A DNA stretch of 64,000 nt from Trichosphaerium sp. ATCC 40318 (GCA_038496445.1 JALMLS010000552.1:102996-166995), one strand, 5' to 3'; positions 7,023 through 14,416 are shown, numbered from the stretch's first letter. Notes: generated by a model not told the origin, from the sequence alone. Translations and numbers: made by a program.

Positions 7023-7958
7023 ATGGAAGTGCTACAAAACGATACCAAAGCCAAACGATGTTTCTCAGACAACTGCGTAGTCATGTATCCTTTCCTGGAC
7101 CACATAAACAATGATATGTTCAATGTAATCGTCAGTATGGTGCTATTAGATGAAGCACCAGCTGTAGCGCTTTTAAAAGCTACAAACAAACGTATCTATC
7201 AACGTATAGCGTCCAATCAAACTTTTACGCCCGATAAGCTTAAAGAAATCGCATTTCTTCAAATACTCAACCCTGACCGTGAAACATACCTAAAAGTACT
7301 TGAATCAGTACAACGAGGCAAGTACAGAGTGTTTTGCTCCAATCAAGAAAAAACAAGCCTTATCTCGTTTTCTTCGATTTATGAATCTCTCTCAACTCCT
7401 AGACTATTCGGTATGGGCATTAACGCAATTGCTGCTATCACATCAGAAGATACAAAAAAGGACTTACCTTGGCCAAACTCGATTTTTTGTGAAGACTGTT
7501 TGGAACTAAGGGGCGATGGAATAGATGGTTTTCGTACCTTTGCCGCTGCACGTGTACTTGATAAGAATGTTTGTAGTAGACATATTAACCACAAGGAAGC
7601 GTTTACTCCTCTTGTATGTGCGACCTGTAGCTTGGGAGATGCTATATTTGAATGGGAAGGAAAGAACTATTGTTCGAAATGTATGATAAAAGGACCAGTT
7701 CGTTCATTGAAATATATTGTACATCATAAGGTTTTTGACAAGGATGAGAGCCCAGAAGATGTTGAATCAAACATACCTGGAGTGTATACTATTGATAAAG
7801 ATAATCCAGAGCTTGGTGTGGAACATTTAGATGATGAAATGAAAGCAAAAGTCGCAGATCCTAACAGCTTTGTGTTTTACATTCAGAAGGTACATGAAAC
7901 CTTCTATAATTGTCAGCCTTTTAGATGTTGTTGCCTATGGATCCTTGGATGGGATTAA
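7023..7958 (+). CDS. Intronless F-box-like protein with Cys-rich C-terminal domain (family member A)
   Basis: 311 aa ORF. LDHINNDMFNVIVSMV...VALLKATNKRIYQRI resembles an F-box. Three CxxC pairs and a CLWILGWD end. Paralog at 13484-14416. Confidence 0.75.
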   Translation: MEVLQNDTKAKRCFSDNCVVMYPFLDHINNDMFNVIVSMVLLDEAPAVALLKATNKRIYQRIASNQTFTPDKLKEIAFLQILNPDRETYLKVLESVQRGKYRVFCSNQEKTSLISFSSIYESLSTPRLFGMGINAIAAITSEDTKKDLPWPNSIFCEDCLELRGDGIDGFRTFAAARVLDKNVCSRHINHKEAFTPLVCATCSLGDAIFEWEGKNYCSKCMIKGPVRSLKYIVHHKVFDKDESPEDVESNIPGVYTIDKDNPELGVEHLDDEMKAKVADPNSFVFYIQKVHETFYNCQPFRCCCLWILGWD

Positions 7959-8227
7959 ATACTCTTCCTAGTTGCTTGGGGATAATACTAACTATATAAT
8001 AAATACGTTACAAACACATTTCTGTTTTTTTTCGTGTTTGTTATTTTAAGCAATTGATTAGGCTGTAAGCGTTGACAATATGTCAACGTGGAAAGAGCAA
8101 TAATCACCTAATAAAAAAGAAGACATTCAATGCATAGTACATTCTTGCTTGATGCAGTTAAAATTAGAGTAGTGACCTTAAACTGTTAGAGAAAAAAGCT
8201 TTATTAAAGATTGTTTTACCAAACCGT

Positions 8228-8400
8228 TTACACATCCCATCCGAGAATCCAAAGGCAAACACAATCAAAGCCATCATGGAAATATACATCTGTTTCTATG
8301 TGTTGAATACAGAATCAAAACTATTAGGATCAGCCAGTTTCTCTTGTGTTTCGTAATCTAAATTGTCCACAGCAAGCCGTGTGTCATTTCGTCGTTGCCT
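8228..8400 (-). pseudogene. 3' fragment of the same F-box-like/Cys-rich family (third variant)
   Basis: Reverse strand reads LAVDNLDYETQEKLADPNSF / (frameshift) CIQHIETDVYFHDGFDCVCLWILGWDV*, homologous to the C-termini of members A and B. Confidence 0.75.
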
Positions 8401-9390
8401 AACCCATTTTGTAGTTTTATCTAATGTATTGTATGTTTCATTCAAGTTTTACTAATATTTTCTAGAAAGTGAGTTTTTAGCACTTTTAGCAGATCTAGCA
8501 AGATCTGACACTTCTGTCAAATGGTGTAGATCTATCACAATGTGAACTATTTGTGTTACAATGTTGTCCTTCATTGTATGACTTAGGTACCTTACGGTAA
8601 GTGATAGCAAAATTTTCAATGTAAGTTTCAACAGACCATGGAAGATGATCGCAGTATTTTTACCTACGCCAACTGTACACGGTACGATCAAACCACAGAG
8701 GTGTTCAATGCGCTAAAAGCGAATTAAAAAGGTATGATGTCCTACAAAGCTATCGCATTACCGCCAAACACGGTATGAATGCCTCAAACACTGTTTGCTG
8801 TATGTTTTGCTTCAAAAAATCAACGTACGTGTATAACTTACTAGCGCTACGCTAGCGCCTACCCCACGCTAACAGAAGCGCTATGGTAGCATCCAAGCAG
8901 CAATGAAGGTGTAACAACGTCAAAACCGCCCCAAAACACCGCCAGCGTTGCTGTAGGCTTTGTAAACGCCGCTAGGCGTCAAATATGTAAATAAAAAAGT
9001 TTGCTCTGGGGTTTGTTAAATCACGTGGTTTGAAACGGTTGGATTCACTGGACAGGCGTGAGGGTAGATCACATTTAAAAAAATGACAATTTGCAAGATC
9101 TGTCAGAAGTCAAATCCGTCAGATCTGACAGATCGGGCAGAAACTGGATTTTTTTTGCTAAAAGTCAGTCTGTCTCAAAACTTGAATGAAACAGACAATA
9201 TGTGATGTACCTGATTGCACGCCATCGCAAGATTTCCATATTGTCCGTATGTATGCTATACGCAATAAGGTTAGTTAGTTAGTGTCATATTCCTAAACGC
9301 ACTTTAATATTCAAGAATTCAACGAAAACCTTATTGTATTTTTAGGAAGCTTGCTTATTATTCCTTTGTTCAACAAAATACTGACGCGCC

Positions 9391-11594: not shown

Positions 11595-12436
11595 TACCTG
11601 TTTGATGTGTTATTGAGTGAATAAGGGCTTTTGAGCGCGTTAGCCTAAAAAGCGAAAATAGTTAAGTTTTCATAATTATCAATTTTAAGTGCCTATGGCA
11701 TCTTTTTTATTTTCAAACAAGTAATCTTAAGCACAAATTGCACCTTGTCTCAAAACCGTCTTTAGGTTTCACATGACACTCTCATTTCGCCTAAAAAGCA
11801 ATTTTGTTTTTTGCGGTTTTGAAAATTTTCGAGTTTTCTGAGATCCTCAGGTGTAGGATGACGTGTATGTACGAAGTGTACAGTTGACTAGTTAACAGAA
11901 GAATATTGATATTGTGGTGTACAAATAGCTCAATCTACTGGTTTGTAACACGTGATTTTAAACACCAAAAATACATCGTGTTGTTTTCGCTTTTAATTTA
12001 TGTTTACAAGCCGACACTAGCTTGATGCTTATTTGGCTTTTCCGTGGACGTTTTCGCGTTACTATAGTTTGGTGTTGTGAGTTTGCTCGTGGTAGCGCTT
12101 ACTTGTAAATTGTTTACGCACAAGTTTTCTTCTCCGATTAACATCCTGCTAAACAGTAGCGTTTATGGGCACCCATGCAAAATACATAGTATTTTGCTTA
12201 TCTAGTGCAGGCAAAATGGCCAAAATCTCAGTCAATCTCTGTCAACAAACTCTTTCGAAACATTGTCACAAAATGACAGCTATCTGACCCTGAACTAGCT
12301 CAATATTATGTGCTGCGGACGAGCGCATATTCAGTACCTGTGCCTACGTATAACACTGTGCCTTTTCCACCATTCAAACAAACATCTCGCTCATTCTGGA
12401 GCGAGTGTAATTCTCGCATTATCCTACACCCTTGCA

Positions 12437-12815
12437 TTGTAAGAGATGTTGTAACGCTTGTGTAAGTAGTTAAATCTGTTTATTACATGAACGTGTTACA
12501 AGGTCTTTTATGAGCGTTTCTAGTAAGTGAGTGTATCTCGTGGCGTGTGAAACATCCTGAATAGACTTCGAGTGGCTTCGTGAACAAGTTTCGTGATAAT
12601 AACATCCCAATAGACTATAGGCATCGATAATGGTTTACATAGTCTACACGAAGCATCACGGAGCCAATATGTGAACGATTAGTAAAATACAAGAACCTAG
12701 AATTAGCGAATAAGGAAAGAGTTGGAGCGTGAAGCATTCACAGAACAATAACCAATAAGCCATGAATATATAGGTGTAAGCTATCTAAGTGATCACGTGA
12801 CGCATGTATATGACA
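12437..12815. repeat. Dispersed ~350 bp repeat, homologous to 27357-27685
   Basis: Both copies begin tgtaagagatgttgtaac, end cacgtgacgcatgtatatgaca, and are colinear with indels. Confidence 0.85.
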
Positions 12816-13483
12816 TGCATATACGGTTTTTTAGCTGGAGTGTTCTATCCTGTTGTAGTTCCTTTTTTGCACGCTATTATATATTTGTGCCAAGAGATGA
12901 GCGAACTGGCGTTAATCAAAGAGAGTACGATCAACCAACCCTAGTTCCTACGAAGGAACTACCTTATTTTTACTACACAAATTATGTTTTAACGTTGAAC
13001 CGTGCACGACCGCTTTTACTGTCAAGTGTTTTGCAAAACTTGGTATATACTTTCGGTCAGATTTTGCCTTGAGTGGAGCACAGCCCGACCAAAAGCCAAC
13101 CCTATTTGCTTGTGTGCTAATTTTAAAAAAACGAAAAGGGTTGCTAACACTCATGTATTGTGAACGTAAAGCTAACTATATCTTAGTATCGGAGGCTGCA
13201 TTGGAGGTTGCATAGTTATCACTATTATATTGTTTTCCGGTTTATTTTGGTTGTTTTAGAATTGGAGATCAGACTAATAAACCAGTATTTATCCTTATGC
13301 AGCTGCAGTTGTTTGTTACCAAGGTGGCATATGTTTGTGGTTGTTATTTACACCAACTAAGTTGGCTTGCACCATTACTACGTATTGGTGTTGTTTAAAT
13401 ATTTGTTCTATAACTTCTTTCTACCATGTGTCTAAATTAAGAAAAAACAAGGAATGTATCAATGGAATGTTTATTTTCTAGTT

Positions 13484-14416
13484 TTAATCCCATCCAAGAA
13501 TCCACAGGCAACAACTATCAAAAGGATCATGGTAAAAGAGGTCTTCACGTAGCTTTTGAATACAAAACACAAAGCTATTAGGATCCACAAGTTTTGTTTC
13601 CATTTCATCATCCAAATGTTCTGCAGCAAGAAATTGATCATCCTTATCAATATTATAGAACCCAGGAAGGCTTAATGCACTAGGACTGCTTTCTACAACA
13701 TTATGATGTATCATATACTTCAAAGAACGAACTGGACTTTTTATCATACATTTCGAACAATAGTTCTTTCCTTCCCATTCATATACAGCATCTCCCAAGC
13801 TACATGTCACACATACAAGGGGAGTAAACGCTTCCTTGTGGTTAATATGTCTACTGCAAACATGTTTATCATGTACAAGTGCGGCAGCAATGGTACGATA
13901 ACCATCTCCAAACACAGGCCTAGGGACAGAAATACAGTCTTTACAAAAAACACTGTTGGGCCAACACATGTAAATCGCTGAGTCAACTGATAGTTTTTTT
14001 ATAGCAGTAATTGGATTGATACCCATACCATATGTTCTAGGTGCTGATAGAGACTCATAAATCGAAGAAAACGAGATAAGGCTTGTTCTTCCATGATTGG
14101 AGCAAAACACTCTGTACTTGCCTCTCTGGACTGATTCAAGTACTTTTAGGTATGTTTCACGGTCAGGGTTGAGTATTTGAAGAAATGCGATTTCTTTAAG
14201 CTTATCGGGCGTAAAAGTCTGATTGGACGCTATACGGTGATAGATACGTTTGTTTGTAGCTTTTAAAAGCGCTACAGCTGGTGCTTCATCTAATAGCACC
14301 GTACTGACGATTACGTTGAACATATCATTGTTTATGTGGTCTAGGAAAGGATACATCGCTAAGTAGTTGTCTGAGAAACATCGTTTGGCTTTGGTTTTTT
14401 TCAGTTGCATTTCCAT
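13484..14416 (-). CDS. Intronless F-box-like/Cys-rich protein (family member B), inverted paralog of 7023-7958
   Basis: The first ~120 aa are almost identical to member A. The Cys scaffold and WILGWD end are conserved. Confidence 0.75.
   Translation of the reverse strand: MEMQLKKTKAKRCFSDNYLAMYPFLDHINNDMFNVIVSTVLLDEAPAVALLKATNKRIYHRIASNQTFTPDKLKEIAFLQILNPDRETYLKVLESVQRGKYRVFCSNHGRTSLISFSSIYESLSAPRTYGMGINPITAIKKLSVDSAIYMCWPNSVFCKDCISVPRPVFGDGYRTIAAALVHDKHVCSRHINHKEAFTPLVCVTCSLGDAVYEWEGKNYCSKCMIKSPVRSLKYMIHHNVVESSPSALSLPGFYNIDKDDQFLAAEHLDDEMETKLVDPNSFVFCIQKLREDLFYHDPFDSCCLWILGWD

Follow-up and report, generated by a model that had tools for sequence, protein, structure and literature searches.

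Two intronless genes, here called A and B, lie inverted to each other in a stretch of 64,000 nucleotides (nt) from the genome of Trichosphaerium sp. ATCC 40318 (GCA_038496445.1, JALMLS010000552.1:102996-166995). The whole stretch, G000:C135:102996-166995, is referred to as the window. From comparative analysis of the sequences, the locus appears to belong to a lineage-restricted F-box-like family with a zinc-bearing domain of unmatched fold, and to have been shaped by concerted evolution and one module swap. An initial annotation had seen in the same genes receptor-like adaptors with a constant framework and loops resembling complementarity-determining regions (CDRs), possibly supplied by a silent donor fragment. 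We lean towards another explanation, in which A and B are functional members of a family of ~300-residue proteins, and the alternation of scaffold and variable patches comes mainly from ectopic recombination among old paralogs and not from targeted hypermutation. All genome searches were made in the 70.3-Mb, 642-contig assembly; C-numbers denote its contigs (C135 holds the window) and L-numbers denote family loci.

The two genes and the four patches in which they align poorly, V1 to V4 (coordinates and residues of A), are:

7023..7958, plus strand: gene A, an intronless open reading frame (ORF) with 311 codons and a stop, which resembles B through codon 234 and has another ancestry from codon 235.
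13484..14416, minus strand: gene B, 310 codons and a stop in one intronless ORF, lying 5.5 kb from A in opposite orientation; it groups with the C57 paralog, and not with A, from codon 128 on.
7404..7469, plus strand: V1, residues 128-149, a variable, indel-prone loop before the first CxxC.
7500..7544, plus strand: V2, residues 160-174, inside the first putative zinc site.
7731..7781, plus strand: V3, residues 237-253, directly after the junction described below.
7890..7931, plus strand: V4, residues 290-303, with a model confidence (predicted local distance difference test, pLDDT) of ~52; an A-type copy survives in a fragment next to locus L006.

Over the full length the A and B proteins are 73% identical (BLASTP E 3e-170), and this identity is distributed as a mosaic. 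In sliding windows of the DNA alignment it is 97-99% over codons 21-100 and 91-94% in the Cys/His block (columns 181-240), but drops to 57-69% in two patches at the centre and, within the 3' third, to 64-80%. The near-identical 5' part and Cys/His block reported in the initial annotation are thus real, and all four of its variable segments were found where it had described them. A repeat search returns three inverted blocks between the genes, of 430 nt (91%), 216 nt (89%) and 197 nt (76%). The similarity is limited to the ORFs, as the DNA up- and downstream is unalignable. A frameshift followed by compensation was considered as the origin of the unalignable patches and rejected, since the DNA itself has diverged and the indels are in frame.

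Part of contig C228 (C228:10746-30484) is an inverted collinear copy of C135, covering window positions 1-15000 and the DNA upstream; the two are 97-98% identical and share their gene order (B', A', L006' on C228). A' and B' are ~97% identical to A and B at the protein level, and the ORFs of both genes are intact in the C135 and C228 copies. The C228 copy may be a haplotig that was left uncollapsed or else a (segmental) duplication of very recent date.

Silent sites show that the mosaic involves exchange between the copies. The synonymous divergence (dS) between A and B varies 7-fold along the gene: it is 0.14 for the N-terminal block, where codons 1-20 contribute most of it, 0.27 for the zinc block, 0.81 for C1, a conserved block, and 1.02 for V1. 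Among sites that are polymorphic in the subfamily, A and B agree over as many as 44 in succession (permutation P<=1e-4). When the test is limited to variable codons at which five subfamily members have the same amino acid, 18 silent sites in a row agree, spanning codons 36-118 (P=0.009). The same run tests give no comparable run for A-C57 or B-C57. The clustering of divergence that the initial annotation had noticed is therefore beyond chance.

Segment trees built with iqtree disagree along the gene. The tree of the N-terminal block groups (A,A',B,B') with 95% bootstrap support, while codons 128-317 group (B,B',C57) with 72% and leave A outside. For example, in V2 the non-synonymous divergence (dN) between B and C57 is 0.07, and A differs with a dN of 0.68. 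Segments have been exchanged between the copies: the silent-site run, the discordant segment trees and a module shared with a third locus all bear out the segmental conversion proposed earlier.

A second inverted pair of family genes is found on contig C16, L015:1450-2265 (plus strand, C16:28934-29749) and L016:1372-2181 (minus strand, C16:31407-32216). Most 60-nt coding windows of this pair show 93-100% identity. Upstream of the two genes the DNA cannot be aligned. Codons 101-160, which hold the V1-V2 equivalent and the first zinc knuckle, carry 16 non-synonymous and 2 synonymous changes as well as indels; this non-synonymous excess is by itself not significant. The C16 pair repeats the A/B pattern, and is the best hint that the loops of the first zinc site are functionally important.

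The 3' end of A has another history, which it shares with the DNA behind it. Three features describe this region:

7722..7725, plus strand: junction at codons 234-235; A is B-like upstream and module-like from here (three-way alignment, blastn).
7725..8387: tail-to-tail module of 663 nt, consisting of A codons 235-311, a 275-nt spacer and an inverted fragment; it recurs inverted near L006.
8234..8391, minus strand: pseudogene fragment from an L006-type paralog, of which it keeps the final ~55 codons but no 5' part, with one 1-nt deletion.

The module matches positions 2875-2228 of the L006 locus with 85% identity over 679 nt (blastn). This second copy lies inverted at ~G000:C135:100209-100856, ~10 kb upstream of A and outside the window. 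The two copies have swapped roles, i.e., the 3' end of L006 corresponds to the fragment in the window, while the decayed fragment beside L006 carries A's versions of V3 and V4. The latter fragment is 81-82% identical to the 3' end of A, whereas the 3' ends of A and B are only 76% identical to each other. The change is sharp: within a few bases at 7722-7725 A shifts from B-like to resembling the L006-side fragment, and the other copy is truncated there.

The initial annotation had placed a fragment at 8228-8400 and considered it a possible silent donor, with a third variant of the last module. The fragment exists, at 8234-8391, but it runs tail-to-tail with A on the minus strand, spans two frames because of the 1-nt deletion (tblastn, six-frame translation) and is a copy of the 3' end of another paralog. 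Its identity is 89% to the 3' end of L006, compared to 60% to A and 65% to B (range 58-65% for the two), and it has been copied together with the spacer. There are only two such 3' fragments per haplotype. The window fragment is a relic of an L006-type gene and a passenger of the module duplication, not a demonstrated donor for A or B.

L006 itself (C135:99482-100363) has an in-frame TAA where its C228 copy, L008 (C228:28211-28984), reads CAA. In L008 the open frame is limited to 265 codons and its match starts at query residue 53; each copy thus carries damage of its own kind. Further, ~200 nt of the window at 8993-9189 are 77% identical, inverted, to L006:3040-3220 just past the module. This stretch is not collinear with the module and may be a small repeat or a second rearrangement.

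We suggest that the mosaic arose in the following way. The 663-nt module has been copied, in inverted orientation, between the A and L006 loci, and A from codon 235 onwards, as part of it, is of different ancestry. In the simplest case, the junction at 7722-7725 would be the recombination joint of this event, and would now serve as the homology cliff at which later A-B conversion tracts end. Recent gene conversion has homogenised A and B over codons ~21-125 (the 5' block) and in their zinc block, while V1 and V2 escaped. No other copy of A's V1-V2 DNA was found in the assembly, which argues that these patches escaped the conversion that homogenised their flanks; a third donor for the V1-V2 patch of the C16 pair was not found there either. 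The escape could be due to chance and divergence, or to selection. The patches themselves would be surface loops that tolerate substitutions and indels.

A and B are part of a larger family, as proposed earlier. A protein search of the genome finds 17 family places and a profile search 32, of which ~20 are open frames of 265-345 residues; a profile of the N-terminal domain finds ~30 loci. All members are intronless and share a conserved order of motifs: L..L..D.F..IV..LL ... LKSTNK...RI, then LK..A.L, a loop ending in P....C..C, a second ligand pair and an invariant C-x2-C-x14-16-C-x2-C. A word-based search of 5.8 G proteins gives no relative of the family. A profile search of 1.84 G representatives gives 15 matches at E<=1e-3 (best 2.6e-18), all of them unnamed metagenome proteins (ENA, JGI, Logan); the motif order is shared by all seven that were inspected. 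The family does therefore exist outside this genome.

The metagenome proteins P0001-P0006 and P0009 are 209-313 residues long and have the family motif order, P0009 without the N-terminal unit, and L071 is a metagenome family locus on a 10.2-kb contig (ENA ERZ25072490). Pfam gives nothing above cut-off for A, B, 20 members and 10 metagenome relatives. Searches of PDB sequences with a single protein, the family profile or the N-domain profile return only noise at E>=1 with a weak LIM resemblance, and a scan of IMG/VR with the alignment of closer members finds no viral relative. The family is rare and unannotated, and its members so far known come from this amoeba-like genome and a few metagenomes alone.

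An AlphaFold2 model of A, built with a 20-member alignment, has a pLDDT of 82.9 and a predicted template modelling score (pTM) of 0.79. Residues 1-18 are disordered and are followed by a three-helix unit and two further helices:

7086..7232, plus strand: F-box-like three-helix region of A, residues 22-70, with helices at 23-43, 45-54 and 56-63 (AlphaFold2, VIA, hhalign, entropy).

Across 16 distant paralogs this region has the lowest entropy of the ungapped segments. In an exhaustive VIA structural search of 48,161 chains with the model, the matches fall on residues 19-92. F-box domains from SCF receptor structures make up at least 10 of the best 50 rows, aligned to model residues ~20-96, and the matched parts of these chains correspond to their F-boxes. 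The matches include Fbl10 (Z 4.3, root mean square deviation (rmsd) 2.3, 39 residues) and two Skp2 entries (Z 4.1 and 3.8, 41 residues each, 17% identity; rmsd 2.9 for the former). Cdc4, FBXL17, FBXL5, cyclin F, beta-TrCP1, FBXL2 and Legionella AnkB are also matched. The Z scores of these rows, 3.5-4.3 over ~40 residues, are low, as expected for that length.

When the N-terminus of the family is compared with 20 Pfam-positive F-boxes of the same genome, hhalign aligns them in the canonical register, LPxE[IL]L..I...L ... VCK.W against L..L..D.F..IV..LL ... LKSTNK...RI. The E-value is 0.0026, or 0.0012 with the metagenome relatives added; the reported probability is 12-19% for both runs, and 1 of 200 column shuffles attains the score. 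In a language-model comparison A has F-box clusters as neighbours, most of them of Nucleocytoviricota. The genome has Skp1 genes, with loci at C137:79701-79844 and C57:207719-207859. The architecture also fits, with the unit at the N-terminus (residues 22-70) and, beyond a helical linker, a variable C-terminal domain of 210 residues that is separate from it. In the distant members L038 and L041-L043 only the N-terminal third of the full-length profile is matched, and the first zinc site is lacking. An F-box-like function of the N-terminus is likely in our view, and A and B are probably ubiquitin-ligase adaptors that would bind Skp1. The Skp1-Cullin-F-box (SCF) adaptor proposed initially is in line, weakly, with the structure matches and with the hhalign register; what did not hold is a recognisable F-box at the level of Pfam, as no member passes that model.

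The C-terminal part contains two candidate metal sites:

7488..7592, plus strand: first putative zinc site, C156-x2-C159 and C184/H187(/H190), in conserved columns and enclosing V2.
7617..7682, plus strand: second putative zinc site, C199-x2-C202 ... C217-x2-C220, invariant in 20 of 20 aligned members, on two beta-hairpins.

In a 12-member alignment C156 and C159 are invariant and C184 nearly so; distant members have CxxC...CxxC at the first site. The pattern of the family is C-x2-C-x24-C-x2-H(-x2-H)-x8/11-C-x2-C-x14-C-x2-C, and its eight conserved Cys/His ligands would fit two zinc sites. The conserved Cys/His scaffold of the initial annotation is accordingly found again, as invariant CxxC pairs. 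In the model of A, a sheet of strands 101-107, 113-116, 283-289 and 302-309 holds an insertion of two pairs of beta-hairpins that bear the ligands. The insertion is predicted with confidence, with block pLDDT values of 93-97 over residues 171-230 (94-97 over 191-230), and the hairpin strands 209-211/214-216 lie in blocks with a mean of 94-95.

A LIM domain, whose consensus is C-x2-C-x16-23-H-x2-C-x2-C-x2-C-x16-21-C-x2-C/H/D, was considered for this region and rejected on spacing, as the two sites are 8-11 residues apart instead of 2. All resemblances are sub-threshold: LIM in Pfam (E 0.62 in one of 20 members) and in PDB (E 1-5), DZR_2 in Pfam (18.9 bits against a cut-off of 27 in the metagenome relative P0001) and the B-boxes of COL2 (Z 2.9). 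Modelled alone, the C-terminal 214 residues reach a pLDDT of 74.7, and a VIA search with this domain gives a best Z of 3.6 to scattered small alpha/beta folds, with no assignable fold. The model thus predicts an alpha/beta domain whose fold is matched to nothing solved, and which may be the target-binding part. The suggested plan of the protein is an F-box-like three-helix unit that would dock on Skp1 of an SCF ligase, a helical linker and a C-terminal alpha/beta zinc domain that would bind the target.

The four variable patches are also special in the structure. The four blocks of lowest pLDDT after residue 20 are 141-150, 161-170, 241-250 and 291-300, i.e., V1-V4. In the 16 distant paralogs, which were not used to define the patches, V1-V3 have 46-65% gaps and V4 has the highest entropy. 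The discrete patches of the initial annotation are hence indel hot spots in distant paralogs as well, and the per-site entropy that it had asked for is non-uniform across them.

The ratio of non-synonymous to synonymous rates (dN/dS, omega) in the scaffold is 0.25-0.39 in seven pairs; at about 0.27, the scaffold is under purifying selection. Together with the ORFs that are intact in both copies, this suggests that A and B are functional genes. In the patches, the pooled A-B ratio is 1.02 (confidence interval (CI) 0.48-2.05), a value that is inflated as the patches were picked for their divergence. The pooled ratios are 0.86 and 1.10 in the C57 pairs and ~0.55 in more distant pairs. Point estimates of omega between A and B exceed 1 in V2, V3 and V4; V4 alone gives 3.5, on ~7 synonymous sites. 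These values, in the parts of the model with the lowest pLDDT, do not bear out CDR-like loops under selection. They essentially amount to what the initial annotation had named as a refutation, disordered linkers with a dN/dS of at most one. The divergence is truly non-uniform, yet it is compatible with unconstrained loops.

A number of observations weigh against our interpretation. For the recombination part, the (B,C57) grouping has just 72% support. A dN/dS close to 1 does not distinguish neutral drift from a mixture of positive and purifying selection, and the low pLDDT of the loops may partly stem from the shallow 20-sequence alignment. For the F-box part, the Z scores are in the range that VIA itself calls common for small helical units, and unrelated non-F-box helical proteins score alike in the same list. 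The near-universal Pro of LPxE is missing in the family and the Trp is not conserved either. The Pfam F-box (PF00646) is passed by none of 20 members (best E 0.068, in one), with no F-box match in A or B. The N-domain profile finds no PDB F-box by sequence and overlaps none of the 150 listed Pfam-positive F-box loci. A transitive link through loci matched by both models was also looked for, and found no overlap among the listed loci. Foldseek of the A model against PDB and BFVD gives nothing at E<=0.001.

An alternative that draws on several of these observations is that the N-terminus is a generic helical bundle and not an SCF adaptor, so that A and B would belong to a zinc-finger family of other function, possibly from a giant virus. 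The viral part would fit with the Nucleocytoviricota origin of the nearest language-model clusters and with the report that the Trichosphaerium genome is rich in viral-derived F-box and MORN genes (PMC10521059). However, the F-boxes among the best 50 VIA rows all cover the same ~45 residues and are far above their share of the 48,161 chains. The register in hhalign is canonical, an N-terminal unit followed by a variable C-terminal domain is the architecture of F-box proteins, and there is neither a relative in IMG/VR nor a significant match in BFVD. We regard this alternative as possible, though improbable.

It can also be speculated that A and B are part of a receptor repertoire, in which V1-V4 are kept different by diversifying selection, the scaffold is homogenised by conversion and pseudogene fragments donate modules. 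Several features would agree with this: variable patches at the same places in two independent inverted pairs, the 16 of 18 non-synonymous patch substitutions on an almost identical background in the C16 pair, the point estimates of omega above 1, and the second, silent copy of A's last module adjoining L006. There is also a precedent in nematode F-box families (PMC8120010, citing Thomas 2006). Against this, the pooled omega is only 1.02 in patches picked for divergence and 0.55-0.86 in other pairs, and V2 is conserved between B and C57. Neither V1-V2 patch has a third copy in the assembly, and the fragments are decayed, only 81-89% identical to their full-length counterparts, and copied with non-coding spacer as in a segmental duplication. 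We find a repertoire of this kind unlikely.

Its strongest form, an amoeba ubiquitin-ligase repertoire whose target loops are actively diversified by exchange with silent 3' fragments while conversion keeps the scaffold constant, is very unlikely. If true, it would be a germline, conversion-based recognition of fast-evolving targets, e.g., giant-virus or intracellular-bacterial proteins. Finally, an origin of A and B as single-age duplicates without recombination has hardly any probability left: the conserved blocks are indeed the structurally confident, low-entropy parts, as uneven protein constraint would predict, but silent sites share the block structure, dS varies 7-fold, the segment trees disagree and A's 3' end is nearer to the L006-side fragment than to B, with a sharp junction.

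The window as a whole is eukaryote-like, with sparse long ORFs and a GC content of 33-41% in 2-kb windows. It contains no human sequence, toxin or provirus. Between A and B, an exon-sized ORF at 10701-10889 (minus strand) has a Rho/Rac-type GTPase motif and is probably part of a spliced gene. An ORF with MORN-type repeats lies at 19126-19755 (minus strand). Two intronless ORFs, 1743-2582 and 50530-51783 (both minus strand), have an N-terminal motif that resembles the Pfam-positive F-boxes of the genome, followed by leucine-rich repeats (LRRs). A third intronless, LRR-rich ORF at 53699-54973 (minus strand) begins, as listed, inside or after an F-box-like motif. Genome-wide, at least 150 PF00646 loci score above cut-off, and a first look gives 1398 candidates.

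The locus by itself opens no long-standing question. If the F-box reading holds, the C-terminal part would be a previously undescribed target-binding domain of SCF ligases, with no match in Pfam or PDB, from an amoebozoan-type genome for which an unusual wealth of F-box genes is already reported.

In nematodes and plants, families of F-box adaptors pair a conserved F-box with domains for substrate binding that evolve fast (Thomas 2006 as cited in PMC8120010; Ma et al. 2021, PMC8120010). The present family is similar in having a (putative) Skp1-docking unit at the N-terminus and a lineage-specific C-terminal domain, many clustered paralogs and pseudogenes, and variation mostly in the C-terminal half. 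Unlike those families, it is only F-box-like, as the Pfam model does not recognise it and the LP motif is lost. Its C-terminal domain is not FTH, FBA, LRR or Kelch but an unmatched alpha/beta fold with two putative zinc sites, and its mosaic would be explained by conversion and a module swap, not by demonstrated positive selection.

In Trichosphaerium, genes of putative giant-virus origin are reported to carry F-box and MORN domains most often (PMC10521059), and the many Pfam-positive F-box loci of this genome, as well as the F-box-LRR and MORN ORFs in the window, resemble these amoeba and giant-virus expansions. The A/B family differs from them in being missed by the Pfam F-box model and in having no viral relative in IMG/VR or BFVD.

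With regard to the metal sites, the family is like LIM, B-box and double zinc-ribbon domains in its eight Cys/His ligands in two sites, the aromatic-x-C-x2-C ... YC-x2-C pattern and the paired beta-hairpins of the model. It is unlike LIM in the wider distance between the sites, and all matches are below threshold.

Inverted duplicates, such as the arms of palindromes, and tandem multigene families undergo concerted evolution by intrachromosomal gene conversion. A and B are likewise neighbouring and inverted, have unrelated flanks and are near-identical, including at silent sites, only in homologous tracts that end at homology cliffs. Here, however, the tracts form short patches inside a gene of 930 nt and leave out internal loops, and one end of A appears to have been swapped for a module of a third locus.

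Diversification templated by pseudogenes is found in chicken immunoglobulin genes, in the variant surface glycoproteins (VSG) of trypanosomes and in vlsE of Borrelia. Similarities to these systems are the truncated silent copies of variable modules next to the genes and the silent counterpart that exists for at least one of A's modules. However, the silent copies here are two per haplotype, decayed, 11-19% diverged and co-duplicated with a spacer, with no cassette array and no sign of ongoing switching. The locus is rather a compact case in which conversion tracts and a module swap mimic a constant framework with hypervariable loops, and it calls for caution in reading such patterns as immune-like diversification.

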